Positions 3,701 through 62,560 of a stretch of DNA of 64,000 bases are shown piece after piece; position 1 is the stretch's first letter, and every line of letters starts with the position of its first letter. Under the pieces are notes generated by a model, which did not search any database, was not told where the DNA came from, and saw only the letters and a list, made by a program, of their open reading frames with translations. Position numbers and translations under genes: made by a program. Source of the stretch: Octopus bimaculoides (lineage: Eukaryota); contig NC_068982.1 of NCBI RefSeq assembly GCF_001194135.2, positions 188,547,732 to 188,611,731 of the forward strand, written 5' to 3'.

Positions 3701-3800
3701 TTTGCAGACCCCAGAGAACCATTTGCAGACTCCCCTCAACAGCTTCCACTGAAAGAAGAAAACTGTGACATGGTTTTGTTTCCTGATTGCGACTATTAAT

Positions 3801-4002
3801 TAGAAAATTACTATTTTTAAATCTCACAAGAGATATTCAGCAACAGTACTTTGGAGCAAAGATTATTTGCCAACATATTCGAAAATATAAGGACACAGAT
3901 CGTGTCATATAGCCAGCTGGAGATGACGTCTCCTGGGGCTAAATTGCAGCAACATTCGTCCTAAACTAGGACTGCCATGTTATGTTGGCAAACAATCTCT
4001 AC
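3801..4002. mobile_element. Family D element, truncated (inverted arm + forward 3' part, no hammerhead)
   Basis: 13-bp TSD tgc(g/a)actattaat at 3788-3800 and 4003-4015. Confidence 0.85.
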
Positions 4003-4222
4003 TGCAACTATTAATGTCTATAGGAAATCTATGAATGCAACTTTGACCGTGTAATTCAATTCCTTTAATGTTGTTAATTGTCCATCAAAAAATAGAATTG
4101 ATATTTTCTANNNNNNNNNNNNNNNNNNNNNNNNNNNNNNNNNNNNNNNNNNNNNNNNNNNNNNNNNNGCAGGGTTTTTATATCCTCAACAAAAAGTATT
4201 TGATTTTTGCTCTATAAAGAGA

Positions 4223-4830
4223 TCATCATCATCATCATCATTTAACGTCCGCTTTCCATGCTGGCATGGGTTGGACGGTTCGACTGAGGTCTGGAAAGCC
4301 AGGAGGCTGCACCAGGCTCCAATCTGATCTGGCAAAGTTTCTACAGCTGGATGCCCTTCCTAACACCAACCACTCCAAAAGTGTAGTGGGTGCTTTTACT
4401 TGCCACCAGTACAAGGGCCAGTCAGGCGGTTCTGGCAATGACCACGCTCAAAAGGTGTTTTTTTTTACATGCCACCTGCACAGGAGCCAGTCCGGTGGCA
4501 CTGGCAACAACCACGCTCAAATGTCGTTCTTCACGTGCCACCAGCACATGTACCAGTAAGGCAACGCTAGTAATGATCACGCTCGAATAGTGCTTTTTAC
4601 ATGCCATTGGCATGGGAGCCAATCCATGGCCCTGGAACGATCACACTTGGTTGTGCTTTTAACGTTCCACTGGCATGAGTGCCAATCAGGTGGTACTGTC
4701 ATCAGCCATGTCAGCGATTTTGATTTGATTTCACTTGCCTCAATAGGTCTTAACAAGCAAAGTTTATTGTCCAATGAATGAGGGGTACTCATAAAGGGGC
4801 TGCTTACACCCACTGGCATAGGCCACGGGC
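4223..4830 (-). mobile_element. RTE 3' UTR/tail copy
   Basis: (CAT)n, conserved tail and four tandem units. Ends approximate. Confidence 0.85.
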
Positions 4831-5732: not shown

Positions 5733-6017
5733 CTTACAGTTCTATATTTAAGAGGTGAAGAATTATGTACATTAATTACATTTGACAGGGCATATGGCAT
5801 AATGGTTAAGAGCACGGGCTACTAACCCCAAGATTCTGAGTTCGATTCCAAGCAGTGACCTGAATAATAATAACATTGAAAAATACCTTAGGAATAAGAA
5901 CCCAGGTTCAAAATTTCCCCAAGATACCTGATGAAGGCTGGAGGGTATATCAGCCGAAACGTTCTGTTAACAACAAACAAGATGAGGACAAATATCTGTC
6001 AAGTGTAAATAATGTAA
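5733..6017 (+). mobile_element. Family C hammerhead/tRNA-head retroelement (inverted 3' arm + forward copy) in last RCAN intron
   Basis: 19-bp TSD atacttgt(g/a)ctataaacat at 5714-5732 and 6018-6036; A box 5795-5805; B box 5838-5849; hammerhead 5923-5968 with damaged stem I. Confidence 0.85.
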
Positions 6018-11004: not shown

Positions 11005-11376
11005 GCTTCCGTGCTAGTGGTATGTAAATAGCACCATTTGAGCATGATCATTACCAGTGTTGCCTTACTGGCACATTAGAAAATCATTTGAGCGAGGTCG
11101 TTGCCAGTGCCGCTGGACTGGCTCCTGTGCAGGTGGCACGTAAAATACACCATTTCGAGCGTGGCCATTGCCAGTACCACCTGACTGGCCTTCGTGCTGG
11201 TGGCACGTAAAAGTACCCACTACACTCTCGGAGTGGTTGGCATTGGGAAGGGCATCCAGCTGTAGAAACTCTGCCAAATCAGATTGGAGCCTGGTGTAGC
11301 CATCTGGTTCACCAGTCCTCAGTCAAATCGTCCAACCCATGCTAGCATGGAAAGCGGATGTTAAACGATGATGATG
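11005..11376 (+). mobile_element. RTE 3' UTR/tail copy
   Basis: Three tandem units plus tail plus GAT repeats. Confidence 0.85.
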
Positions 11377-13088: not shown

Positions 13089-13387
13089 CGTACATTATTT
13101 ACATTTGACGGATATTTGTCCTCATCTTGTTAAGAGCACAGAATACTAACCCCAAGATTCCAAATTCGATTCCAGGCAGTGACCAGAATAATAATAATAA
13201 TAACAGCATCGAAAAATACCTTAAGAATGAGAACCCAGGTTCGAAATGTCCCCAAGACACCTGATGAAGGCTGGAGGGTATATCAACCGAAATGTTGTGT
13301 TAACAACAAACAAAATGAGGACAAATATCCATCAAATGTAAATAATGTACATAATTCCTCATCTCTTAAACATAGAAATGTATTATT
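13089..13387 (+). mobile_element. Family C element inserted in a TTAA-type MITE
   Basis: 10-bp TSD ATTATCTCAA at 13079-13088 and 13388-13397; short inverted arm then forward copy; hammerhead 13256-13301 with two substitutions. Confidence 0.85.
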
Positions 13388-13576: not shown

Positions 13577-13970
13577 GAAAGTGAAGTTGCTAGAATAAGA
13601 ATGGTCAGAGCAAAGTTCAGAGAGCTTCAATCTGTTGGTAACTAAGGGCCTCTCCCTCAAAGTGAAAGGCAGGTTGTTCGATGCCTGTGTACAGCTGTCA
13701 CATGGGCTTTGACAACAGAGGACCTGCAAAGGCTTGAAAGAAATGAAGCTAGCATCATGCTCTGCTGGATGGGTGATGTCAGTGTGTACGTACGACAGAG
13801 TTCGAGTGTCTTAAGAGGAAAACTGGGAACAAGAGGCATCGGATGTCGTGTGCAAGGGAGAAGACTGCACTGGTTTGGTCATGTCATGCGCATGGATAAG
13901 GACAGCTGCATAGAGGAGTGCTAAGCTCTAACTGTGGAGGGTACATGTGGAAGAGGCAGACCCAGGAAGA
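13577..13970 (+). mobile_element. RTE LINE RT C-terminal fragment
   Basis: EDLQRLERNEASIMLCW...RRLHWFGHVMRMDKDSC...GRGRPRK. Confidence 0.9.
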
Positions 13971-23350: not shown

Positions 23351-23675
23351 ATTATTTACATTATTTACATTTGACAGATATTTGTCCTCATCTTGTTTGT
23401 TGTTAACACAACGTTTCGGCTGATTTACCCTCCAGCCTTCATCAGTTCAAACCTGGCTTCTCATTCCTATTTTCTAATATTATTATTTGGAGCCTGGTGC
23501 AGCCTTCTGGCTCACCAGTCCTCACTCAAACCATCCAACCCATGCCAGCATGGAAAGCAGACGTTAAACGACGACGATAATGATGATGATTATTATTATT
23601 CAGGTCACTGCCTGGAATTGAACTCGGAATCTAGGGGTTAGTAGCCTGCACTCTTAACCACTGCGCCATATGCCC
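23351..23675 (-). mobile_element. Family C element interrupted by an RTE 3' tail
   Basis: Reverse-complement tRNA head at ~23590-23675 and hammerhead at 23405-23450; the RTE tail sits at ~23488-23590 inside the (TAT)n tract. Confidence 0.8.
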
Positions 23676-24468: not shown

Positions 24469-24796
24469 CTGAAACCAAAACAAAAAAAAAAAAAAAACAC
24501 CNNNNNNNNNNAAAAAAAAAAAAAAAACACCTCAAAATATGGTAAATAACTTTATGTTCACCCCTAACAAATACATAATTTAATAGGGAGTTAACCTACT
24601 CAGAGCTGGGCCCTTGTGTCTAAACTTTACTCTATTTGAACTCCTGAGCAAAAAAAACACAATTACATTTCTAAATCTCTCAGAGATTATCTTGCTGCTA
24701 CTGCATAAATCTCTGAGAGATTTAGAAATATATTATTTTCTATTTCAAAAATCAGTGAATGCATATGTATGTATATATATATATATNNNNNNNNNN

Positions 24797-25000
24797 TTTC
24801 AAAAGCGAATAGGCATGGACAGCTAGCAAGCCATGCTACTCCAGACTGATGATGAGCAATGACTCTGAAACCAGTCTCTGGATGCTGGCTTTGCAGGGTG
24901 GAGGTGCTTGTCTCCACTTTGAAAACATAAGGACACAGGAAATGTGTCAAGTCCAACAGGAAACGGTGTTTCTTAGGGCTAAATAACAGTAGCATTCTTC
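24797..25000 (+). mobile_element. D-related hammerhead element (diverged subfamily)
   Basis: The hammerhead is followed by gaaaacataaggacacag...gggctaaataacagtagcatt, alignable by eye to the family D 3' module. The 5' end abuts an N gap. Confidence 0.7.
24841..24881 (+). ncRNA. Type I hammerhead ribozyme motif, D-related family, predicted cleavage after GUC (C24876)
   Basis: CCAGA-CTGATGA-T-GAG(CAATGA)CTC-T-GAAA-C(CA)G-TC-TCTGG. Stem I is perfect, both core boxes are intact and the triplet is GUC. Stem I extends past an internal loop (GCAAGCCA with TGGCTTTGC). Confidence 0.8.
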
Positions 25001-25250
25001 CCTTTCATGGGACCATCACATTAAGTTGACAACAGAATCCTCAAAAAACTGAGCAGAAGAACAATGATGGGCCTTTCTCTCAACTGCCATATTTGTTATC
25101 CTGGATCATTACTTCCTTCATCTCTTTCACCAGTTTCATTGCCCAAATCACTCTTATTGCCAGCATAAGTGTAAACTCTTCATCCAAAGAGTAAATATCA
25201 CCAATAATTTGCACAAATGTAAGAGAAAAAAAAAAGTCTAGGCCTTGCAT

Positions 25251-25677
25251 ATTATTTACATTTGACAGATATTTGTCCTCATCTTGTTTGTTGTTAATAC
25301 AAGATTTCGGCTGATATACCCTCCAGCCTTCATCAGGTGTCTTGGGGAAATTTCAAACCTGGGTTCTCATTCCTAAGGTAATTTGTGATGTTGTTGTTGT
25401 TATTATTATTATTAATCAAGTCACTGCCTGGAATCGAACTCGGAATCTTGGGTTTAGTAGCCCGCACTCTTAACCACTATGCCACATGAATAATAATGAT
25501 AACATTGAAAAATAGCTTAGGAATGATAACCCAGGTTTGAAATTTCCCCAAGACACCTGATGAAGGCTGGAGGGTATATCAGTCGAAACGTTGTGTCAAG
25601 AACAAACAAGATAAGGACAAATATCTGTCAAATGTAAATAATGTAAATAAATTCCTCATCTCTTAAATATAGAACTG
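25251..25677. mobile_element. Family C head-to-head inverted dimer
   Basis: 12-bp TSD TAGGCCTTGCAT at 25239-25250 and 25678-25689; minus arm with tRNA head, plus arm lacking the head; two hammerheads. Confidence 0.9.
25552..25597 (+). ncRNA. Minimal type I hammerhead motif, family C, intact copy
   Basis: Stem I GACAC/GTGTC is perfect, stem II has one G-U pair and the core is intact. Confidence 0.72.
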
Positions 25678-27330: not shown

Positions 27331-27888
27331 GCCAAATATATTTACTTTGTAATCCCGGAAACAACTCTAGAATTCTTCCAGATTATATTCGTTTTTCTCT
27401 TGTGTTACCAAGTTAAAGGTTTTGCAAATCTGGAAAAACAATGCAACTCTGACCTGACTATAAACAAAGTTACCATTCATACCAAGATGGCATCATTTGT
27501 TTAGCAATTTTCTGTGAAAACATGTCCAGACATTCAGCTGCTCATGTCTGAATCAATAGACAAGTAGATTATCATCTCACTTGAAAAACAAGTGAAGATT
27601 GTTAACAGGAAAGGCATCGAGTTGTAGAAAAACTACTTCATGTACACTTGTTTAACCCATGCAAACACAGAGGCAGACACTTAAATGATGATTCCTTGGT
27701 GAACTCCATCTCAATGCTATTATTAATATAAACTCGGTGGGACACCTTAAAAACAGAACTTCACTAATGGTTGAAATCTGTCCTAGTATCTCTTTTTTTT
27801 TTTTGTGGGGTGTGGGGTGTGGGTCTTTCTTTCAGAATTTTAAGCAACCAGACAAGACAAAATATTGAAGCAAAAATTCCAGACTTAC

Positions 27889-28005
27889 TAAGATCAAAAT
27901 TATACATGCAGTATGTTCTAAGAATGTCGTTTAGAACTTGTAAATTATGGTTTCCATCTCCTTCAAAGAACTTGTGAGTGCGATCGGTTCTGGACACATC
28001 TTTTT
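27889..28005 (-). CDS. TBC1D15: TBC1D15/17 exon with arginine finger (KDVSRTDRTHKFFEGDGNHNLQVLNDILRTYCMYNFDL-S)
   Basis: ctctAG/GTAAGT; 117 nt, phase 1 to 1; IxxDxxR motif (IEKDVSR). Confidence 0.97.
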
Positions 28006-28864
28006 CTAGAGAGAGAAACAAAAATGTCATCAGTTACACAAATATTGGCTTTCTCTGACAATGTCAAGAAAACTTATAATAAAATACACCCATTTCTCTG
28101 ATCTCATCTCAAGTCTACTTTGTCTCTAATCTTGGTTTGACTTGTTTTCACAGCTATGAGCTTCAAACACATGCTCCAGTCACACTTCATGTCCTTATTA
28201 TCAACAGAGCTATTTCGTTCAGGAAAATATAATCATTGTATAATTATTTCAACTTAATTGAACTAGGTCTGAAAAGCAAGTCTAATGTGTGTGCGTGTGT
28301 ACCCTGGTGTAATTACCCTGTCTACTAAGTCAAGAACCAGTGGACACCATTTGATATAAACAGTTCCTTCACAAGGCGGCTGTTTGATTTTTGTACATTA
28401 AACACACACCACCACCTCATATCTTCCCCACCATCACCACCACACTTTTGTACCTCTTAGGTTATTGTAAGGACAATAACCACAATCCAGAGACCAAGAA
28501 GAGGAAGAGAGGAGTTATCCTGAAACCAAAGACTTGGCCTTCATGTCTGCAACAGAGTAACAAACTCTACGAAAGGCAACCAATAGGCCAAACGGTATTG
28601 TTAAACCAGATGAACGCAGTTAGAATCAATACCACAAGGCACCTTGTTATGTGATGCTGACCATTCTGCCAATCACTGTCCTTCACTGTTATTTATATTT
28701 ATTGATCCTCCAAAAGATGAAAAGCCAAATTAACTTTGGTAGAACTTTCATGATTATTAAGGATACACTTGCTGAAATTAATTCCATGCTGGTACCAAAT
28801 ATAAAGTGCATACATGGTACCAACTAAATGTAGATAAATGTTACATCAAAGGACATTAGAACAC

Positions 28865-29005
28865 TTATCCGGCAGAAACACATGTCGGATTGGAATTTAA
28901 TGGGAATAATCCTGTAATAGGGGACAATGCTACTGTTGTTTACAGCCCCAGGAAGACATCTCCTCCAGCTGGCTAACGACACACTGTCTGTGTCCAATTA
29001 GTATT
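28865..29005 (-). mobile_element. 3' module of another D-related subfamily
   Basis: The reverse complement reads ggacacagacagtgtgtcgttagccagctggaggagatgtcttcctggggctgtaaacaacagtagcatt, similar to the D tail. Ends approximate. Confidence 0.6.
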
Positions 29006-29187
29006 TGTGAAGGAAAATCATCATTCCCATCTCTAGCCTAACATGATAGACAACAACCTTGGTTTCTGATACACACACACACACACACCTCCCTTGCATC
29101 TTTCTCTTCGGTCTAGGATTCTTTCTCATTGTGCATACATCATCAACCTCCAGTGATGTTCTGATTAAACTAATGATGCCAACCTAC

Positions 29188-30920: not shown

Positions 30921-31389
30921 TTACAAAATTACTATTTTTTAAATCTCACAACGTAAGACATTCAGCAACAGTACTTTGGAGTAAAGTACTGTTTACTCCA
31001 GTACTTTGGAATAAAGTACTGGAGTAAAGGTTGTTTGCTGACATAACATGGCGGTCCTGGTTTAGGACTAATATTGCTGTAATTTAAAAATAGTAATTTT
31101 CTAATTTATAGATCAGTGACTAGTTGTTACTTTGAAAACTATATATTTCAAACGGGAATTTAGCAGTGCCACCTCTAGCCAAACAATTATTCTGTGCTGA
31201 TGAAGGGAAATAACGATATACAGACATTGTTTTGAACTGAGTGGGGGTACTAGATTCCATTGTTGAAAAGTACAAGGACACAGATCGTGTCGTATAGCCA
31301 GCTGGAGACGATGTCTCCTGTGGCTAAATTACAGCAACATTCGTCCTAAACCAGGACTGCCATGTTATGTTGGCAAACAATCTTTACTC
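30921..31389. mobile_element. Family D element (inverted arm + forward monomer, hammerhead partly deleted)
   Basis: Perfect 13-bp TSD CAATAATAGACCA at 30908-30920 and 31390-31402; CTGTG-CTGATGA-AGGGAAATAAC at 31192-31214, then a deletion. Confidence 0.9.
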
Positions 31390-31845
31390 CAATAATAGAC
31401 CAGGTCTCAATAGATTTAGACCTTATTTAATTACATAGATGTAGTGAGACAATTTAGATATGTTCCATTCTGTATTTCCCTATATATTCCTGTGCATCTG
31501 CAAATTCTCGGTGGCCACACAAGACACGTATAAACATACAAGAATTATGATAGAAGGACAGGAACAAGTGTCTTGCTGTAGAAGTTGGAAAGGAAGAAAA
31601 GGGAAAAGATGATGATAAGGTGTCAAGGGACACCTTTAAGGTACAAGAATGAGATATATGGTCAACAGGTGTGGTCTGTGTGCAACGTTATGATGCAAAT
31701 CACTGCTTGATCTGCTAGAAACAGTAGCTAAATTTCCTTCATCTTACCAAACTAATAAACAATATAATTGGAGAGGTGGTAGGGCTATTAAAATAAAATG
31801 ATAACAATGATAATTTCCAATTAGATAATTAGAAAGAAAACTTAC

Positions 31846-32810: not shown

Positions 32811-33289
32811 CTATATTTCAGAGATGAGGAATTTATTTACATAATTGACATTTGACGGATATTTGTCCTCATCTTGTTTGTTGTTAACACAGCGTTTCGG
32901 CTGATATACCCTCCAGCCTTCATCAGGTTTCTTGGGGGAAATTTTGAACCTGGGTTCTCATTCCTAAGGTATTTTTTGATGTTATTATTATTATTATTAT
33001 TATTCAGGTCACTGCCTGGAATCGAACTCGGAATCTTGGGGTTAGTAACCTGCACTCTTAACCACTACAGGCATATGGCATAGTGGTTAAGAGCACAGGC
33101 TAACCCAAGATTCCGAGTTCAATTCCAAGCAGTGACCTGAATAATAATATCGAAAAATACCTTATGAGTGAGAAACCAGGTTCAAAATTTCCCCAAGACA
33201 CCTGATGAAGGCTGGAGGGTATATCAGCCGAAACGTTGTGTTAACAACAAATGAGATGAGGACAAATATCCGTCAATTGTAAATAATGT
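32811..33289. mobile_element. Family C near-full-length palindromic dimer
   Basis: Two ~240-bp arms meet at ~33070; TSD-like agaactg(g/t)atttt at 32798-32810 and 33290-33302. Confidence 0.9.
33197..33242 (+). ncRNA. Minimal type I hammerhead motif, family C, consensus-intact copy
   Basis: GACAC-CTGATGA-A-GGCTG(GAGGGTATAT)CAGCC-GAAA-CG-TT-GTGTT. Palindromic ACGU stem III; GUU triplet. Confidence 0.75.
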
Positions 33290-34361
33290 AGAACTGTATT
33301 TTGTATAAATGTTTTAAATTGTAACAACTGTACAATCACTGTCCTAGCAGTACTTTAGCATGTTTTGTTACACATTATATAACACATCTCAAAGCCTGTC
33401 TTTTAGGTGAAGAGAAAAGCTGTTTCATTGTTTACATAAAGTCTAAGATCCATATAGAGAACTGATGTGTAAACATCAAAAATAAATCCACAGTAATTAG
33501 GAATTCAATTAATAAATAGCAGTTAATTAAAACTTCAACACATTGTTACAGTGAAGTAAATCCAAGAGGGACAAAACATATATCCTATTTTTGAGTAAAA
33601 ATAGCTTTGAAATTAATTATGTATCAAAATTACGTAATTATACATTTAGTAATGTTTATCTTAATGAAACAGCTGTTGAATACAAAGTATGAAGTACATG
33701 TAAAATTTACGCTTTCCTGCTTATATTCTTAAGTTTCATTCCTTAACAGTGTTTAATGTTGTTCTTCCTGTTGTTCTAATTATATCATCATTAAATTAAC
33801 TTCTAAGAGTAATTATATTAATTACTTTCTGCACTCTACACACTTTGTGCTGTTTGTTTGAGGTAAACTCCTGTGTTCAATCACTCCAGGATTGAAAACG
33901 CATCAAAGAGTCTGAGATCTTTCTATTGAGCCATTGACGTCATTGGATACAGAATCCTAAAACTGCTTCCAACAGTTTGGTCAAAGTCTTACTCCCAGCA
34001 AAGAACAGACCATGGAATCGGTACCACAAATGGTTTACTTATGTTGAACATAGGATTCTAGATTCCTCTACCAAGTCTCAAGTAGGTTTTGCAATGAGAA
34101 CCAACAGAAATCAGTTTACTAGCAAAGTCAGATGGTGATGTCATTTTAAACTTCCACGGTGTTTAGCACCAGGTCAACAGAGCAGACCTGTAATCAAAGA
34201 CACCCCAGCCATGACCATCCCCCGTTTTTCAGGCATTATATATCCTGGATGTGAAGGTGCATGGCATAGTGGCTAGGATGTTGCAACGACAACCTAAAGA
34301 CCAAGGTTTCAATCCCCAGAACAAGTAACACGTTTTGTTCTTGAGCAAAACATCAGTCAAT

Positions 34362-35371
34362 CAGAAAACTACTATTTTTAAATCTCACACCGAGAGATAT
34401 TCAGCAACAGTACTATGGAGTAAAGACTGTTTGCTGGCATAACATGGCAGTCCTGGTTTAGGACGAATGCTGCAGTAATTTAGCGCCAGGAGACATCATC
34501 TCCAGCTGGCTATACGACACAATCTGTGTCCTTATATTTTCAAACAAGGGAATCTAGCACCCCAACTCAGCTCAAAATAATATCTGTGTATCACGATTTC
34601 CGGGTTATTTCCTTTTATTAGCAAAGAATAATTGTTCAGCTGATGANNNNNNNNNNNNNNNNNNNNNNNNNNNNNNNNNNNNNNNNNNNNNNNNNNNNNN
34701 NNNNNNNNNNNNNNNNNNNNNNNNNNNNNNNNNNNNNNNNNNNNNNNNNNNNNNNNNNNNNNNNNNNNNNNNNNNNNNNNNNNNNNNNNNNNNNNNNNNN
34801 NNNNNNNNNNNNNNNNNNNNNNNNNNNNNNNNNNNNNNNNNNNNNNNNNNNNNNNNNNNNNNNNNNNNNNNNNNNNNNNNNNNNNNNNNNNNNNNNNNNN
34901 NNNNNNTCTCACACCGAGAGATATTCAGCAACAGTACTATGGAGTAAAGACTGTTTGCCGGCATAACATGGCAGTCCTGGTTTAGGACGAATGCTGCAGT
35001 AATTTAGCGCCAGGAGACATCATCTCCAGCTGGCTATACGACACAATCTGTGTCCTTATATTTTCAAACAAGGGAATCTAGCACCCCAACTCAGCTCAAA
35101 ATAATATCTGTGTATCACGATTTCCGGGTTATTTCCTTTTATTAGCAAAGAATAATTGTTCAGCTGATGAAGGGAAATAACCCGGAAATTGTGATACACA
35201 GATATTGTTTTGAGCTGAGTGGTGGGTGCTAGATTCCCTTGTTCGAAAATATAAGGACACAGATCGTGTCATATGCCCGGCTGGAGACGATGTCTCCTGG
35301 GGCTAAATTACAGCAACATTCATCCTAAACCAGGGCTGCCATGTTATGTTGGCAAACAATCTTTACTCCAT
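34362..35371. mobile_element. Family D palindromic insertion (true length ~490 bp; inflated by duplication across a gap)
   Basis: 10-bp TSD ATCAGTCAAT at 34352-34361 and 35372-35381; the arms meet at ~35160. Confidence 0.85.
35159..35201 (+). ncRNA. Family D hammerhead core, 5' strand of stem I lost at inversion junction
   Basis: CTGATGA-A-GGG(AAATAA)CCC-G-GAAA-TT(GT)GA-TA-CACAG; the expected CTGTG 5' strand is replaced by TTCAG. Confidence 0.6.
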
Positions 35372-42017: not shown

Positions 42018-42281
42018 TTATTCTCAAACGTGTGATAATGGTATAAATAGCGTGATCAGGATAAATTATCCATAGCGTCTTATAAAGCTAAATTTATAAG
42101 TTCTAAAACAGCAGAAGAATTCATTACTGGGCAGTTTAGCTTAATGGTAAAGCACTTGACGCGTAATCACAGGGATGTGAGTTTGAGTCTCATGGCTGGC
42201 CGGTGACGTATTTTTCTGCAATGTATGGATAATTTATCCTGTTCATGCTATTTATTAGCATTATCATGCGTTTGATAATAA
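42018..42281. mobile_element. MITE with ~57-bp TIRs enclosing a tRNA-like sequence
   Basis: Arms 42018-42074 and 42224-42281 are ~88% complementary. Confidence 0.8.
42130..42201 (+). pseudogene. Degenerate tRNA, anticodon CGT (Thr-like)
   Basis: D stem GCTT/AAGC, anticodon loop CG-CGT-AA, T stem GTGAG/CTCAT with loop TTTGAGT; acceptor stem has a mismatch and the anticodon stem a 1-nt bulge. Confidence 0.65.
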
Positions 42282-42957
42282 AAGACATTTATTTCTGTAT
42301 ATATGAATAAATTTTAAAAATACTAATTTAATCAACAATCAACATGGACAAAATGAAGAACCATGCATGAAGAACACAACACAACTAGAGGGGTGGGGGA
42401 ATGAATCTTTCAGGATCGGTGCCACCAAATTTTCAGACATCATTAAAAATGCAAGCATCTACAGACATGACTTTGTAATCAAACTACAGTTACCGTTCTT
42501 GTGGAAAAGAAGGGAATTAAATAAAGAAAAGATACATTGTTCACTATTTCAAAAGAAAACAAGTAACACTCTATCGATTCATAAAAGAAAACAAGGGGTC
42601 CTTTTTCTCTCGTGCATTCATGTGATTTCCATAAAACATTTGAAATGGAACAAGTTTGAAATTATTTTCACATGTCTGCCTGTCTCTATTGTGGCTGGAA
42701 TTGTGCACATTTCACCATTTCCTTTTCACTCCCCCCCCCCCAGTCTTAGGTGAACATTTTCTGGTTATAGAGGTTTCTATGTAAGCCAAGAAGTTAAAAG
42801 ATATATTTATACAACAACAAAAGAAACAGACACCAACAAGAGAATATACACTGGACTTTGTATTATAACACAAACAAACTACTTAAAATCTTTTAACATG
42901 ACCTCTGATACTTGGATGATGTGTTTCAAATGCCAAACTTTGGGGAGAAGAATAACA

Positions 42958-43235
42958 TGCCATCATCATCATCGTCATTCAACATCCGCTTTCCATGCTG
43001 GCATGGGTTGGACAGTTTGACTGGCAAGCCAGAAGGCTGCACCAGGCTCCAATCTGATCTGGCAATGTTTCTACAGCTGGATGCCCTTCCTAATGCCAAC
43101 CACTCCGAGAGTGTAGTCGGTGCTTTTTACGCGCTCCTTGCATGAGGGCCAGTCTGGCAGCACTGGAATCAACCATGCTTGAATGGTGCTTTTTACGTGC
43201 CACCAGCATGGGAGCCAGTCCGGTGGCACTGGCAC
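42958..43235 (-). mobile_element. RTE 3' tail copy (further short copies near 7650, 21930, 30293, 32150, 37000, 40570, 41540, 44768, 47632, 50100, 53230, 60245, 62690)
   Basis: The conserved motif ctggatgcccttcctaa(c/t)gccaacc and the CAT/GAT tail recur at each listed site. Confidence 0.8.
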
Positions 43236-47995: not shown

Positions 47996-48660
47996 GGACT
48001 TAAGAAGCATCAGATATGGTGTGCCAGAGAGACGACTGCAGTGGTATGGTCATGTGATGCGAATGGATGAGGACAGCTGTGTGAAAAAGCGTCACACCCT
48101 AAGCAGTTGAGGGAACCTGTGGAAGAGGTAGACCCAGGAAGACCTAGGATGAGGAGGTGAAGCTCGATCTTCAAACATTGGGCCTCAACCAGGCAATGAT
48201 TAGTGACCGAGACCTTTGGAGATATGCTGTGCTTGAGAAGACCCGACAAGCCAGGTGAGACCATAACCCGTGGCCTATGCCAGTGGTGTATAACCAGCCC
48301 GCTTATGGATACCCCTCATTCATTTGACAATAAACTTTGCTTGTGAAGACCTACTGAGGCAAGTGAAATCAGAATCGCTGATGTGGTCGATGACAGTACC
48401 ACCTGATTAGCACTCATGCCAGTGGAATGTTAAAAGCACCATCCAAGCGTGATCGTTGCCAGGGCTGCTGACTGGCTCTCGTGCAGGTGGCACGTAAAAG
48501 CACCCACTACACTCTCGGAGTGGTTGGCGTTAGGAAGAGCATCCAGCTGTAGAAACTTTGCCAGAGGCTGGTGCAGCCTCCTGGCTTCCCAGTCCCCAGT
48601 CAAACCGTCCAACCCATGCCAGCATGCAAAAAGGCACGTTAAACGACGACAATGATGATG
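47996..48660 (+). mobile_element. RTE LINE 3' end (ORF end + 3' UTR + tail)
   Basis: RRLQWYGHVMRMDEDSCVKK...GRGRPRKT, then the same 3' UTR and GAT tail. Confidence 0.9.
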
Positions 48661-51063
48661 GCACAAGAAAAATAGTAAATTGGGGATCCAAAACAGGATA
48701 CGATGGGTAAAGGAACAAATTTTGCTTTACATGTAGAAATAGGGAGGTTTCTTTCACCAACATTTTAATAGTTCAAACTACACAAGTTAATTTGTGGAAA
48801 GCAAAACAGGAATTTTGAAAGAAGTGTCTATAAAACTAGTTTTTAAAGATTGAATGGTTATAGGGGTCCACCAGAATAAAATAGTAATCAAAGGAGTCTG
48901 TTGATAAAAATTGGTTGAGAACCACTGGTGTAAATGTGTGTCATTCATTCCCAATTTTGGGGGAAAAAAGTTGGGTACAGGAAAGGCATCCAGCTGTAGG
49001 AAATTTGCCTCAATGAATTCCATCTGATCCACAAAAGCATGGAAAAGTGGGCCTTAAATGATGGTGATGATGATGATGACTTAGTGATTTCATTATTTCC
49101 TACTTTGTGTGTATAACTGTTTGGTGAATGCATTCAAGGTGACTCTGTAGCAAGATTTGGCTTAGGTGAAATGCGAAGGGAGGGGGCTACTTGTTACCTC
49201 CTTTGTCTTGGTTCCTCAATCATTTCCAACTGCTTTGATTTATTTGGCCAGCATGGAAGATGGGTCAGAGGTCGTTTACTTTGGTAGAGGAGAGAGTGGT
49301 TAGTACGAACATCAAGGAAAGTAAGCGTGGCTGTGTAGTAAGAAGCTTGTTTCTCAACTACATGGTTCTGGGTTCAGTCCCACTGTATAGAAAATTGAGC
49401 AAGTGTCTTCTACTAAAGCCACGGGCCACCCAAATCCTTGTGAATGGATTTGGTAGACAGAAACAGAAACTCGTGTATGTGTGTGTGTGTCACCCACCAC
49501 CATTTGACAATTGGTGTTGATACGTTTATATCCCCAGAACTTAGCGGTTTAGCAAAAGAAACCAATAGAAAAAAGTACCAGGTTTTAGAATTTAAAAAAA
49601 AAAAGTAAGTATTGGGGTGGATTCAACTAAAAATTCTTCAAGGCGATGCCCCAGCATGGCCGCAGTCTAATGACTAAAACAAGATAAACAAGATTTTTTA
49701 AAATAGTAAACAAATTCATATCCCATTTCTATTTAATATTAGAAGCCACGGGTCAAACCACTGACATTTCCCAGGTTTATGTTTTGAGTGAAGAATTTTA
49801 ATTCAAATATAAAAAGGGATTCCAAAACTTAGATTAGGAATCTTTGACGTATTAAATGAAATGGTGCCAAGACTAAATGCCACCACATCTCAAAAAATAC
49901 TGCCCTTGTTTTAGATCCATTCTAATTTAGACTGAACAGATGTGTTCAAAGGCATTCAAACCATGACCGTCCTTTCTTAAAAACATTAAACCCTGGCCTA
50001 CATTGTCGAAGGGGTTGTGCTTTTTCTAAGGTAACCTCTAACCTCTCACTAGGCTAACAGCCGCTTTCCTTGGTTCCACTTCCTCTCTCAGCTAAGAAGT
50101 CTTTGTCTTTTGATGACCCTGCCGGTGCCATGTAAGAAGCATGTACGCTGGTGCCACATGAAAAACACTTGAGCTGGTACCATGTAAAGAGCATCCAGTC
50201 ATACAAACCACGCCAAAACAGACAAGCGGAGCCTGATGCAGCTTTTTGCCTTGCCAGATCCTGTTGAACTGTTCAACCCATGCCAGCATGGAAAAACAAA
50301 CATTAAATGATGATGAAGATGAATGTGTGGTTTGAGGGAGATTTTGCTGCTATTTCTACCAAGCTGAATGACGACATAAACACTCCCTCGTTGGCACGTT
50401 AAAATGCAGGTAGATGCAGACAGCAGCAATGAAGCAGAGGAAGATGTAAAACTTCCAAATGGAGAGAGCAACAGAAGAAAATAAATAAACCACTTTGAAG
50501 CTGAATGGAAGAAAAAGATTTTTGTCCCCATTGTTTCCCTCAGAGAACCAATGGTACCATTTTGTCAGGACGTGAGCTGTTTAGCAAATTAAGGATATCA
50601 AGTGCAAAAGTGCTCGTTATAAACTATTGCCTTGCAGAAACACAAGAGCTACGAAGTGTAGGGTGAAACTGTTCAATGCACCTAGGTACTCACACAAGGT
50701 TTCTTCACAGGGTAGGGACCATAGAAAGCTTTATAAACCTGAAAGTATAAAAATCTCTTTAGGCAAGGTCACATCATATTTTGGGTTTCCATTTGAGATC
50801 AGAAAATATTTAAAACCCAAACAGCTGCATGACTATGTTACGAAGCAGAAAGTTTTCCCTATACCAGACAACCACTCCCATATCAAGGGGGAAGAGATTC
50901 ACTCCCGTCAAACCAACAAATTCAGCATCTGTCAAAAGACGCAAGTGTGGTGGGGAAGACAGTTGCTGCTGCATCTCATTCAGAGGTCCAAAGCTACCAT
51001 AGCACAAATCTTGTTCTCCAAGCTAGACAGAAAATACAAAATATAAAAAAAGATTAAACTTAC

Positions 51064-56705: not shown

Positions 56706-57756
56706 CTAGGCAACCAAGTCTGTAGTGGGGTGGGGTTGCACTGGGAGTGTAGCGACTAGAGTAAGAATAGCCTGGACAAAGTTCAGGGAGCTCCTACCTC
56801 TGCTGGCAACTAAGGGCTTCTCGCTCAGGGTGGAAGGTAGACTGTATGATGCATGTGTGCAAACAGTTATGCTACACAGCAGTGAAACATGGGCCATGAA
56901 TGCTGAAGATATGCATAGGCTTGAAAGAAATGAAGCTAGTATGATCCACTGGATATGTAAAATCAGTGAGCATACACAACAGAGTGTAAGTGCCCTGAGA
57001 GAAATGTTAGACATAAGAAGCATCAAATGTGGTGTGCAAGAGAGGTGGCTGTGCTGGTATGGTCATGTGTTACGTATGAATGAAGACAGCTGTATGAGGA
57101 AGTGCCACTCCCTAACTGTGGAAGAGGTAGACCCAGGAAGACAAAGGATGAGGTGGTGAAGTATGACCTTCGAACATTGGGCCTCACAGAGGCAATGACA
57201 GGAGACCAGGACCTTTGGAGATATGCTGTGATTGAGAAAACTCAGCAACTAAAGCGAGATTGCAGCCATGCATGTCCAGCCCCGTTAAGAATACCCCTGA
57301 TGCATTGTGCGATATGATATGCTTGACAAGACCAGTTGAGTCAAGTAAAACCAATATCGTAGCTGTGGCCAGTTCCCCCTGCACATAAAAAGCACCATCC
57401 AAATGTGGTCGATGCCAGGTCCACTTGACTGGTTCCTGTGCCAGTGGCATGTAAAAAGTGCCAACCGAACGTGGCCAATGCCAGTATCTCCAGACTAGTT
57501 CCTGTGCCGGTGGCACATAAAAAGCGCTATCCAAACGTGGTCGATGCCAGTGCCGCCTGACTGGCTCCTGTGCCGGTGACACATAAAAAGCACCCACTAC
57601 ATTCTCAGAGTGGTTGGCGTTAGGAAAGGCATCCAGCTGTAGAAACACTGCCAAATCAGACTGGAGCCTGGTGCAGCCACTGGCTTTACCAGAGCTCAGT
57701 CAAAGCATCCAACCCATGCCAGCATGGAAAGTGGACGTTAAACGATGATGATGATG
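56706..57756 (+). mobile_element. RTE LINE 3' portion: RT C-terminus, 3' UTR with tandem hairpin units, (GAT)n tail
   Basis: GCTGSVATRVRIAWTKFRELLPLL...LHSSETW...CWYGHVLRM, then the conserved tail ccaacccatgccagcatggaaagtggacgttaaacgatgatg. Confidence 0.93.
57323..57600 (+). repeat. Tandem array of ~63-66-bp units in RTE 3' UTR
   Basis: Four successive (gtgg)cacataaaaagcacc...gatgccag...gactggct..tgtgcc units. Confidence 0.9.
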
Positions 57757-58399
57757 AAGGCACACATAGCACCTGCCTTTCTGGTCTCTGCTGCTGAAGA
57801 GGAGATAACCACCCTGAAATGCATGCATCCCACAGTCTGGATAGAAGACACTCTGGATGGATTCAGTGTATTTCCACCCATTTGTCTGCAGTGAGAAATG
57901 TTCTCACTAACAAAATACAGGGAATAGCTTTCTGATGAGTTTGACTATGCCCCTAAGCATATTTGAACTGGTAACTAGTGTGTATGTACTGATATATATA
58001 TATAGGGATGGATGTGTGGTAGGAAGCTTGCTAGCTAGCCACATGGTTCCAAGTTCAGTCCCACTGAGTGGCATATAGGACAAGTGTCTCTACTCTAGCC
58101 TCAAGCCAACCAAAGCCTTGTGAGTGAGTGGATTTGGGAGACAGTAATTAAAAGAAGCCGATTATGAACACACACACACATATATATATATATATATGGG
58201 GGGTGGGGAGGGGTGTTCCCCACCTCCGCTTCACAACCACTGTTGATTCATGTCCTTGTAACTTAGCGGTTCAATGAAAGAGACAGACAGGATAGGTATC
58301 AGGGTTAAAAAAGTACTAGGATTAGTTCGTTTGACTGAAAATTCCACAAGGCAGTGCTCCAGCATGGTCACAGTCTAATGAGTACACACACACACATTA

Positions 58400-59890
58400 T
58401 CATCATCATCATCATCGTTTAACGTCCGCTTTCCATGCTAGCATGGGTTGGACGATTTAATTGAGGACTGGTGAAACCAGATGGCAACACCAGGCTCCAA
58501 TCTGATTTGGCAGAGTTTCTACAGCTGGATGCCCTTCCTAACGCCAACCACTCAGAGAGAGTAGTGGGTGCTTTTACGTGTCACCCGCACGAAGGCCAGT
58601 CAGGCAGTACTGGCAACGGCCACGCTCAAAATGGTGTATTTTNNNNNNNNNNNNNNNNNNNNNNNNNNNNNNNNNNNNNNNNNNNNNNNNNNNNNNNNNN
58701 NNNNNNNNNNNNNNNNNNNNNNNNNNNNNNNNNNNNNNNNNNNNNNNNNNNNNNNNNNNNNNNNNNNNNNNNNNNNNNNNNNNNNNNNNNNNNNNNNNNN
58801 NNNNNNNNNNNNNNNNNNNNNNNNNNNNNNNNNNNNNNNNNNNNNNNNNNNNNNNNNNNNNNNNNNNNNNNNNNNNNNNNNNNNNNNNNNNNNNNNNNNN
58901 NNNNNNNNNNNNNNNNNNNNNNNNNNNNNNNNNNNNNNNNNNNNNNNNNNNNNNNNNNNNNNNNNNNNNNNNNNNNNNNNNNNNNNNNNNNNNNNNNNNN
59001 NNNNNNNNNNNNNNNNNNNNNNNNNNNNNNNNNNNNNNNNNNNNNNNNNNNNNNNNNNNNNNNNNNNNNNNNNNNNNNNNNNNNNNNNNNNNNNNNNNNN
59101 NNNNNNNNNNNNNNNNNNNNNNNNNNNNNNNNNNNNNNNNNNNNNNNNNNNNNNNNNNNNNNNNNNNNNNNNNNNNNNNNNNNNNNNNNNNNNNNNNNNN
59201 NNNNNNNNNNNNNNNNNNNNNNNNNNNNNNNNNNNNNNNNNNNNNNNNNNNNNNNNNNNNNNNNNNNNNNNNNNNNNNNNNNNNNNNNNNNNNNNNNNNN
59301 NNNNNNNNNNNNNNNNNNNNNNNNNNNNNNNNNNNNNNNNNNNNNNNNNNNNNNNNNNNNNNNNNNNNNNNNNNNNNNNNNNNNNNNNNNNNNNNNNNNN
59401 NNNNNNNNNNNNNNNNNNNNNNNNNNNNNNNNNNNNNNNNNNNNNNNNNNNNNNNNNNNNNNNNNNNNNNNNNNNNNNNNNNNNTTATGTTCAGCTTTTC
59501 TCTCAAGATACTTACACTCTGTCGGGTATGCACACTGACAATAGACATCCAGCGGAGCATACTGGCTTCATTCCTTGCGAGCTTACGCATGTCCTCAGCA
59601 GTCACAGCCCATGTTTCACTGCCATGTAGCATGGCTGTTCATACACATGTGTCATACAGTCTGCCTTTTACTCTGAGTGAGAGTCCCTTTGTCACCAGCA
59701 GAGGTAAGAGCTCTCTGAACTTTGCCCAGGCTATTCTTATTCTAGCAGCTACACTTTCAGCGCACCCACCCCCACTATTAACTTGGTCACCCTGATAGCG
59801 GAAGCTATCAACTACCTCTAGTTTTTCTCCTTGGAATGAGACAGAAGTTGTTTCCTGTTTGTTTACAGTATTTATTGCACCTGAACATCA
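58400..59890 (-). mobile_element. RTE LINE 3' portion spanning a gap
   Basis: CSGAINT...QGEKLEVVDSFRY...ARIRIAWAKFRELLPLL...LHGSETW on the minus strand; (CAT)n tail at 58400. Confidence 0.92.
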
Positions 59891-61435: not shown

Positions 61436-61822
61436 AAGCAAGTCAGCACATTTCACTTTTGATCAGGATGAAAACAAACTAAAAATAAAACCTCACACAA
61501 ACTCACCGATTTAGCAGCAGAGACCAGTACAGGGGATGAGAAACAACCAGCTTAAGGAGAAGGGAAAGTGGGACAGCTGGTGTGTTGTGTATAAATTCAT
61601 TGTATGTACTGTATACACCCTAATCAATTGCTGTCATAGATAAGTCAAACGATGACAACAACTGACAGGCTGAAGTAAGAGACAAATGAGAAAAAAAAAA
61701 AAAGAGAATGTTTTCTTTTTGTTTTTGCTTTTTAATTGCTTGTATAAACACAAGTATTGATTATTTTCGTTTGACCTTCATATTTTCTCAGGAAAGCTGG
61801 TGACGTGAATAGATTTACTTTT

Positions 61823-62469
61823 GTAGTAAAGATTGTTTGCCAACATAACATGGTAGTCCTGGTTTAGGACGAATGTTGCTGTAATTTAGCCCCAGGAGAC
61901 ATCATCTCCAGCTGGCTATACAACACGATCTGTGTCCTTATATTTTCGAACAAAGATCGTGTTGTATAGCCAGCTGGAGACAATGTCTCCTGGGGTTAAA
62001 TTACAGCAACATTCATCCTAAACCAGGACTGCCATGTTATGTTGGCAAATAATCTCTACTCCAAAGTACTGTTGCTGAATATCTCACGTTGTGGGATTTA
62101 AAAATAGTAATTTTCTAATTTATAGATTAGTGACTAGTTGTCACTTTGAAAATTATATATTTTGAACAAGAATTTGTCAGCACCACCTCTAGGCGAACAA
62201 TTATTCTGTGTTGATGAAGGGAAATAACCCGGAAATCGAGATGCACAGATATTGTTTTTGAGCTGAGTGGGGTTACTAGATGCCCTTGTTCAAAAATATA
62301 AGGACACAGATCATGTCATATAGCCAGCTGGGGACGATGTCTCCTGGGGCTAAATTACAGCAACATTCGTCCTAAACTAGGACTGCCATGTTATGTTGGC
62401 AAATAATCTTTATTCCACAGTACTGTTGCTGAATATCTCTCATTGTGAGATTTGCAAATAGTAGTTTTC
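61823..62469. mobile_element. Family D element: inverted arm + 1.45 tandem monomers (period 354 bp)
   Basis: 12-bp TSD AGATTTACTTTT at 61811-61822 and 62470-62481; direct repeat starts at 61955 and 62309 with the hammerhead between them. Confidence 0.92.
62206..62248 (+). ncRNA. Family D hammerhead, degenerate copy
   Basis: CTGTG-TTGATGA-A-GGG(AAATAA)CCC-G-GAAA-TC(GA)GA-TG-CACAG; stems are intact but C3>U and position 17 = G. Confidence 0.6.
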
Positions 62470-62560
62470 AGATTTACTTTTATTTGTTCAGAATGGAGAG
62501 CTTTAGGGTTTTATAATATTTTAAACATTCAGTTAACAACAAAAGTTATCTTTTACAGAA

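Follow-up and report, generated by a model that had tools for sequence, protein, structure and literature searches.

Does a near-canonical hammerhead ribozyme within an intron belong to the gene that surrounds it, or did it arrive there as part of something else? The question is raised by a motif in Octopus bimaculoides that lies at 24.8 kb of a 64,000-nucleotide stretch of contig NC_068982.1, hereafter the window, and that had been described as a type I hammerhead antisense to a TBC1D15 gene. We examined its letters, its frequency relative to random sequence, its surroundings and its relatives in the window, and then weighed what kind of element would account for all of these.

Parts of the hammerhead module

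The motif was resolved into the following parts, numbered by position in the window and written as RNA.

24826-24894, plus strand: type I hammerhead module of the candidate copy (evidence: sequence, descriptor match, Rfam HH9, covariation)
24826-24836 with 24884-24894: closing stem, GCAAGCCA(U)GC with GCUGGCUU(U)GC
24837-24839: loop 1, UAC, facing U 24883
24840-24845 with 24877-24882: helix I, UCCAGA with UCUGGA, six of six pairs
24846-24852: 5' part of the core, CUGAUGA
24853-24856 with 24863-24866: helix II, U GAG with CUC U
24857-24862: loop 2, CAAUGA
24867-24870: 3' part of the core, GAAA, with G12 at 24867
24871-24874: helix III segment, CCAG, then U16.1 at 24875 and C17 at 24876

Every core position agreed with the consensus (C3 U4 G5 A6 N7 G8 A9, G12 A13 A14, A15.1-U16.1, H17), and the cleavage triplet, G16.2-U16.1-C17, reads GUC, with the predicted cut 3' of C24876. 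The preliminary description had listed all of the core nucleotides, the GUC triplet, G12 at 24867, and a stem I of TCCAGA/TCTGGA leading through an internal loop to a lower helix, and every one of these elements was found where it had been placed. The lower helix gained two further pairs (G24835-C24885 and C24836-G24884), by which the internal loop shrinks to UAC/U; the closing stem comprises 10 bp with single-nucleotide bulges at U24834 and U24892, its 3' arm written out being GC-UGGCUU-U-GC.

Two caveats that accompanied the first description were also correct. Positions 10.1/11.1 form a U·U mismatch, followed by just three Watson-Crick pairs in helix II; the conserved G10.1-C11.1 pair at the helix II base was absent from the candidate and also from the main family of related copies presented below, in which these positions are A·G. 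Helix III consists of A15.1-U16.1 and C15.2-G16.2 around a 2-nt loop, in effect one base pair with a CCAG tetraloop, and the segment ACCAGU is not palindromic.

Descriptor and Rfam searches

We wrote a descriptor that was no stricter than what the candidate motif itself meets: CUGANGA; unconstrained 10.1/11.1 positions; a helix II of three pairs under a 3-8-nt loop; GAAA; a stretch of 0-10 nt whose outer pair closes; UH; and a helix I with five or more of its six pairs. On both strands of the real window the candidate was the single match, while 400 first-order Markov windows, also searched on both strands, returned one match (0.0025 per window), a rate that leaves out the candidate's complete helix I and its 10-bp closing stem. 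A very relaxed descriptor gave 0.42 matches per random window. The earlier ranking of this motif as the best hammerhead candidate in the window stands, in that no other module passed the full descriptor and all five modules of the main family are damaged.

Searches with Rfam hammerhead models had been proposed as a check, and they supported the assignment in part. Across the whole window no hammerhead model reached its gathering score, and none appeared at E<=10 in a 501-nt scan around the candidate. On an 81-nt slice, Hammerhead_HH9 (RF02275) matched the candidate over model positions 1-77 with 28.6 bits and an E-value of 6.3e-6, significant yet below the gathering score of 52; it was seen on the slice only because filters masked it in the longer scans. 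The alignment covers the closing stem, the UAC of loop 1, helix I, the core, the CAA..A of loop 2 and GAAAC..GUC. Among the modules that were sliced and rescanned, only the candidate matched an Rfam hammerhead model: the slice with the head-to-head pair at 35.1 kb (35089, minus; 35145, plus) yielded no hammerhead, only hairpin or miRNA-like matches, and the slice with the module at 62190 yielded no hammerhead match; the cores or stems of these modules are damaged. The modules at 31176 and 34565 were covered by the whole-window scan at gathering scores.

Host gene and orientation

Exons of a TBC1D15-like gene were located on both sides of the motif.

~54.9 kb, minus strand: TBC1D15-like exons, PH_RBD (PF12068)
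28.0 and 26.44-26.59 kb, minus strand: TBC1D15-like exons, RabGAP-TBC (PF00566)
23.0, 22.4 and 21.6 kb, minus strand: further TBC1D15-like exons

Joined, these exons matched the GAP domains of pig and shark TBC1D15 at E 8e-61, ahead of TBC1D17, and the GAP-domain exons were ~70-80% identical to the pig protein as counted from the alignment. The motif is therefore intronic, flanked by minus-strand exons, and, being itself on the plus strand, antisense to its host gene, just as had been proposed. Since the pre-mRNA has only the complement of the motif, the motif would be unable to cut the host transcript. The description "hammerhead in a TBC1D15 intron" thus held for the hammerhead and for its location, and failed as a stand-alone feature of the host gene, the motif being a copy of a repeat.

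A contig from a public collection (L001, Logan contig, SRR11869391) aligned to 27426-28233 with 80% nucleotide identity over a TBC1D15-like exon plus intron. From its sequence, the source would be a related species with alignable introns; the contig spans 27.4-28.2 kb and not the candidate site.

A diverged copy of a dispersed repeat

Self-BLAST identified 24918-25001, directly 3' of the motif, as a dispersed repeat, and together with alignments it placed family copies at 3.8, 28.9, 31.1, 34.4, 35.0 and 61.9 kb. Homology between the candidate locus and this family spans both sides of the motif, from ~24699 to 25043, across a 10-N gap. Judged by these alignments, the candidate belongs, as a diverged copy, to a dispersed repeat of ~354 bp in which this module occupies one fixed place in the unit. 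The copies were mapped as follows.

24664-25043, plus strand: candidate repeat copy, about one unit, aligning with the other copies both upstream and downstream of the hammerhead
61950-62476, plus strand: main-subfamily copy of 1.5 head-to-tail units, period 354 bp (direct repeat 61933-62122 / 62287-62476)
61820-61953, minus strand: inverted 5'-truncated piece, unit 44-177 (two inverted repeats, 92% complementary; unit map)
34907-35370: head-to-head pair, minus copy 34907-35161 and plus copy 35150-35370 (sequence, unit map)
34359-34646, minus strand: near-duplicate of the copy at 34907-35161 (sequence, R1, unit map)
31015-31392: two-part copy, inverted 31015-31087 (minus) plus 31082-31392 (plus), unit 208 to 354 to 176 (R1, unit map)
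3793-4007: hammerhead-free copy, inverted 3793-3877 (unit 150-237) plus 3878-4007 (unit 47-176) (unit map)
28926-29011, minus strand: old diverged fragment without a hammerhead module, unit 47-125, 74% identity, adjoining a (GT)n run

The candidate copy was identical to the family consensus at 45/67 positions upstream and 96/147 downstream, and holds a short hairpin or duplicated piece (24664-24732), the 10-N gap (24787-24796) and, internally, a (TA)n run. In the other copies, the block corresponding to the module reads UCUGUG CUGAUGA AGGG AAAUAA CCCG GAAA UCGUGAU A CACAGA and is flanked by AACAAU/AUUGUU. A covariance model built from the six modules (R1) recovered 24824 (plus), 31176 (plus), 34565 (minus), 35089 (minus), 35145 (plus) and 62190 (plus) at 67-96 bits, and nothing else in the window above 15 bits.

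Each of the five main-family modules in the window is damaged. That of the 61950-62476 copy (62190-62268; R1 95.5 bits) has C3 changed to U and a G at position 17, and the 5' end of this copy is adjoined by the inverted piece at 61820-61953. In the head-to-head pair (R1 91.1 and 79.8 bits), the minus module at 35089-35166 has the dead core CUAAUAA, and the plus module at 35145-35220 has an intact core at which it also starts, leaving it without its own helix I 5' strand. The copy at 34359-34646 is cut by an N gap (34647-34906), and its module, 34565-34642, again has the core CUAAUAA, while the module at 31176-31242 has an 11-nt deletion that takes part of helix III along with GAAA and the 3' strand of helix II. 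The hammerhead of the main family is accordingly one that we infer through its consensus.

The near-identity of 34359-34646 and 34907-35170 around a 260-N gap could reflect a real local duplication or a palindrome assembly artefact; palindromic insertions of such a kind are said to trouble short-read assemblies (PMC8557442). The two modules in this region, 34565-34642 and 35089-35166 (both minus), are the only ones in the orientation of the host gene, and both have G5A and G8A. This would fit selection against active sense-strand intronic hammerheads; as near-identical duplicates, the two modules amount effectively to one observation.

Searches for the family elsewhere used concatenated six-frame peptides of the repeat against public assemblies, where 945 candidates shared words and none reached E<=0.001, and the family's invariant 28-mer in a metagenome scan, which returned one unrelated contig (L002).

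Compensatory change between the candidate and its family

Comparison of the candidate with the consensus of the five other copies, aligned by MAFFT without structural input, contrasted a nearly unchanged core with strongly changed stems. The core was identical at 12 of 13 positions, the sole difference being position 17 (C in the candidate, A in the consensus, either of which is allowed), and the flanks were 65-67% identical. Paired positions outside the core were identical at only 13 of 34, yet all 18 pairs form in the candidate. In ten of the 18, both partners had been replaced with pairing retained: the closing stem and helix I contribute four such pairs each, and helices II and III one each. 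No pair change was uncompensated. Ten such changes were reached in none of 500 shuffles, slid registers gave 0-2, and 93.8% of cells were paired.

The covariation is in essence one contrast, between the candidate and five closely related copies. Even so, ten compensated pairs around an unchanged core would scarcely be expected unless the hammerhead fold had been selected for, and this structure was presumably kept by selection on the RNA of the element and not by the host gene.

Unit properties and insertion architecture

Head-to-tail spacing at 61.9-62.5 kb, from the repeat search, was 354 bp. TRF reported no tandem array at 61.7-62.6 kb, and no intact tandem array was seen among the family copies in the window: one copy comprises 1.5 units and the others one unit or less, with many N gaps next to copies. 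GC content was 36.7% for the 354-nt unit and 44.4% for the candidate copy, each below the 45-50% ceiling of metazoan non-LTR retrozymes. Folded as a circle, the unit is predicted to reach -94.1 kcal/mol and to have 68% of its bases paired; relative to dinucleotide shuffles, z is -3.9. The longest stop-free frame, delimited by stops with no start codon required, reached 62 aa among the six main-family copies; for the candidate copy the figure was 69 aa.

When the copies were placed on the unit map, the plus-sense parts of all of them crossed the cleavage junction. On the 5' side their ends vary, and frequently they adjoin an inverted 5'-truncated piece (3793-3877, 31015-31087, 34907-35161 and 61820-61953). 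Their 3' ends fall into two classes, one at unit ~176 (four copies, joined by the candidate on the basis of its alignment) and one at unit ~232-237 (three copies). No Penelope-like reverse transcriptase or GIY-YIG frame was found beside any family copy or elsewhere in the window, and the element is therefore taken to be non-autonomous; mobilisation by a Penelope-like reverse transcriptase would suit this architecture.

At the 5' edge of the candidate copy, the hairpin at 24664-24732 has arms of ~26 nt and drew many weak matches to miRNA families, far below gathering scores. Its right arm corresponds by homology to a hairpin of the family unit, and its left arm may be a short inverted 5' piece of the sort found at other copies. 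Dating the insertion by this hairpin was dropped, as each arm is itself a near-palindrome and too short.

Origin of the motif and alternative explanations

We regard the candidate as the type I hammerhead module of a non-autonomous, AT-rich, non-coding, retrozyme-like element with a unit of ~354 bp, inserted antisense in an intron of a TBC1D15-like gene, and put the probability of this reading at about 0.83. The life cycle of such an element, proposed here by analogy with known systems, would begin with transcription of a more-than-unit RNA from the repeat. The hammerhead would then excise unit-length RNA, probably best as a dimer through its short helix III, and a host tRNA ligase could circularise it. 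The reverse transcriptase of a Penelope-like element would copy the RNA back to DNA from one of two internal sites, a step that would leave partial tandems, 5' truncations and inverted 5' pieces. Transcription, cleavage and circularisation of the family's RNA are presumed on the same analogy.

The possibility that the host has adopted the motif, as a single active intronic hammerhead that processes a transcript of the locus in the manner of amniote HH9/HH10, draws on its intronic location, on HH9 being its best Rfam match and on its being the only fully intact module in the window. It becomes very unlikely when set against the orientation, which puts only the complement of the motif into the pre-mRNA, the placement of the motif inside about one unit of a dispersed repeat, and an HH9 score of 28.6 bits against a gathering score of 52; L001, the only contig found from a related species, covers 27.4-28.2 kb and not this intronic site. 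Hardly more probable is a DNA element of the foldback or MITE type, with inverted repeats that would resemble hammerhead stems without any ribozyme history. The long palindromes at 34907-35370 and 61820-62065 are what such an element would look like, and the copy at 35.1 kb drew hairpin or miRNA-like matches only from Rfam. However, the palindrome junctions differ in unit position from copy to copy while the 3' ends are common, which indicates 5' inversion during reverse transcription and not terminal inverted repeats. Nor would a foldback account for the head-to-tail period of 354 bp, or for the retention of CUGAUGA, GAAA and U16.1 between stems that diverged with compensation. Plus-strand G·U pairs (column 8/71 in three copies, and singly at 11/68 and 24/58) would become C·A mismatches on the reverse complement, and this mildly favours the hammerhead strand, though with so few cases little weight attaches to it.

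A chance match to the hammerhead consensus deserves mention inasmuch as the motif was chosen after the whole window had been read and a very relaxed descriptor finds matches readily in random windows. The rarity of the descriptor actually met, reckoned before the full helix I and the closing stem, makes coincidence extremely improbable, and homologous modules with covariation cannot arise by chance. Just as negligible is a C/D-box snoRNA in which UGAUGA would be box C and CUGA box D: SNORD109A (16.8 bits) and SNORD41 and SNORD44 (~12 bits) did match weakly, but the gathering scores lie at 35-41 bits (35 for SNORD109A), the boxes are ~15 nt apart as against 60-90 nt, the alignments delete most of each model, and the hammerhead core accounts for the same letters.

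Within the retrozyme-like reading, one extension is speculative and in our view improbable, namely that this is an undescribed retrozyme family in which non-Watson-Crick 10.1/11.1 positions occur in two sublineages (A·G and U·U), while the other helices are compensated, as a result of selection for a weak helix II base, e.g. to throttle monomer cleavage and make processing dependent on dimers. Conceivably, too, this antisense copy in the intron, being intact, has kept its transcription and gives rise to a small circular RNA.

Expected activity of the candidate copy

A complete core, together with a helix I and loops 1 and 2 that resemble those of canonical metazoan type I motifs, would favour activity. 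The U·U at the base of helix II weakens the expectation of activity more than it weakens the class assignment: in the axolotl, HHR_Amex2 (~60,000 copies, 350-bp unit) has U·U at the same place, and its monomer was 22% cleaved in 1 h, while the dimer was efficient (PMC7229834). Metazoan type I motifs working as dimers typically have a short helix III (PMC7229834). Neither the descriptor nor R1 found a second module near the candidate with which a dimer could form, and since ACCAGU is non-palindromic, a dimer would carry two C·A mismatches. Furthermore, a competing fold that pairs C3-U4-G5 of the core with CAG of helix III is predicted at -24.6 kcal/mol, 3.5 more stable than the hammerhead-compatible fold (-21.1 kcal/mol). 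The fast type I ribozyme implied by the preliminary description was consequently not borne out, given the U·U at 10.1/11.1, a helix III of one to two pairs, the missing partner copy and the stabler competing fold. Detectable self-cleavage of the candidate monomer in vitro seems to us doubtful, though well short of implausible, and the copy is most likely a passive, possibly crippled relic.

Repeat-borne hammerheads follow a 'palindromic helix III' rule, and decay at CpG sites fits this rule. The CpG observed/expected ratio of the genome is 0.37. CCAG lies one CpG-to-CpA step from CCGG, which would give the palindrome ACCGGU and suggests that the candidate decayed there; by a similar one-step inference, the family's AUCGUGAU would lie one step from the palindrome AUCGCGAU. 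The window has no second copy of the candidate's subfamily, and both U·U and CCAG may be either subfamily consensus or damage specific to this copy.

Other repeats and RNA-like sequences in the window

A weaker hammerhead-like string is present at 57788-57835 (plus), CUGCUG CUGAAGA GGAG AUAACCA CCCU GAAA UGCAUGCA UC CCACAG. The helix III segment, 8 nt long, is perfectly palindromic, helix I forms 4/6 pairs, helix II has one mismatch, and the string is single-copy in the window. It may be a chance occurrence, for which the relaxed rate of 0.42 per random window leaves room, or a decayed Penelope-like minimal hammerhead. The only match in the window to reach an Rfam gathering score was a tRNA-like sequence at 42130-42201 (plus; 30.9 bits, threshold 29) with acceptor-stem mismatches, which may be a tRNA pseudogene or the head of a tRNA-derived SINE.

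An abundant repeat of ~230-350 bp, unrelated to the hammerhead family, begins 200 bp downstream of the candidate copy (25251-25642), where it forms an inverted pair with itself (25251-25594 / 25299-25642); copies occur at 5791-6013, 13129-13346, 23360-23672, 32841-33287 and elsewhere. Another very frequent repeat, likewise unrelated to the hammerhead, has the pseudo-peptide 'LQLDALPNANHSESVVGAFTCH' on both strands (2019-2306, 4266-4559, 11065-11277, 42912-43145, 48430-48666, 58471-58640 and others). Three ORFs, at 56725-57159 (plus), 58574-59632 (minus) and 13709-13924 (plus), encode a common '...SETWA...ERNEASM...' peptide that had no Pfam match; we take them to resemble the C-terminal part of a LINE-type reverse transcriptase.

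Relation to known systems

The candidate falls within a known class as an ordinary member, and is no gene-specific ribozyme. A convincing match to a hammerhead in a eukaryotic intron should first be checked for membership in a repeat family, and what has conserved the ribozyme here is the life cycle of a mobile element rather than any regulation of TBC1D15. What the locus adds is a retrozyme-like family with evidence inside a single window: a unit of 354 bp, ten pairs with compensatory change and an insertion signature of the Penelope-like kind.

Schistosoma Sm-alpha is a SINE-like repeat with a canonical type I hammerhead, a UAC bulge in helix I, a CAAAUA-type loop 2 and G10.1-C11.1, and its monomer is fast when helix III is extended. 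By that description the candidate resembles it as a repeat-borne type I motif with UAC in helix I and a similar loop 2, and differs in its U·U. Likeness to HH9 (RF02275), from the RECK intron of amniotes, extends to the closing stem, the UAC of loop 1, the 6-bp helix I, the CAA..A of loop 2, GAAAC...GUC and the intronic setting. HH9, as reportedly described by de la Pena together with Garcia-Robles in 2010, is single-copy, on the sense strand and ultraconserved, with a stable helix III. The candidate, unlike HH9, is antisense and repeat-borne, and scores 28.6 bits against the gathering score of 52.

In Penelope-like elements, insertions take the form of partial tandems with a 5'-truncated copy in inverted orientation at the 5' end (PMC8557442), and the reverse transcriptase has two adjacent internal start sites that give rise to an optional 'tail' (PMC11167929). 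The octopus copies resemble the hammerhead-bearing pLTRs of these elements (PMC4209133, PMC8557442, PMC11167929) in their partial tandems, in the inverted 5'-truncated copy adjoining the 5' end, in two alternative 3' ends ~56-60 bp apart and in hammerhead motifs close together on opposite strands. Unlike Penelope-like elements, the family copies have no RT/GIY-YIG frame attached: a search for an autonomous element found no long ORF in or next to any copy, and the RT-like ORFs of the window lacked a Pfam match. The minimal hammerheads of Penelope-like elements have a long helix II and G10.1-C11.1, whereas the candidate is of canonical form, with loop 1, a closing stem and helix III.

Metazoan non-LTR retrozymes have type I hammerheads, units of ~170-400 nt, low GC and self-paired circular RNAs (PMC7229834), examples being the 350-390-bp repeats of mussels and the 220-240-bp repeats of corals (Cervera & de la Pena 2020, PMC7229834). 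The present family shares with them the 6-bp helix I, the four-position helix II, the short helix III, the 354-bp unit, a GC content of 36.7%, the lack of coding capacity, the head-to-tail spacing seen in one copy and a strongly self-paired predicted circle. In contrast to those retrozymes, it is represented in the window by copies of 1-1.5 units with no long arrays, and has a helix II base that is non-Watson-Crick both in the main family (A·G) and in the candidate's sublineage (U·U). With axolotl HHR_Amex2 / Rtz_353, itself weakly active as a monomer and dependent on dimers for cleavage, the candidate shares the U·U at the helix II base and a unit of ~350 bp, and the main family shares a helix III of two pairs plus a tetraloop. 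The likeness is one of structure, and the candidate departs from the axolotl motif in its non-palindromic helix III (A-U plus CCAG). Its mismatched helix II base would be the second natural instance after HHR_Amex2, a matter of mild structure-function interest that raises no new question. By analogy with these systems, the module would best be grouped among the type I hammerheads that belong to metazoan retrozymes and are mobilised by Penelope-like elements.
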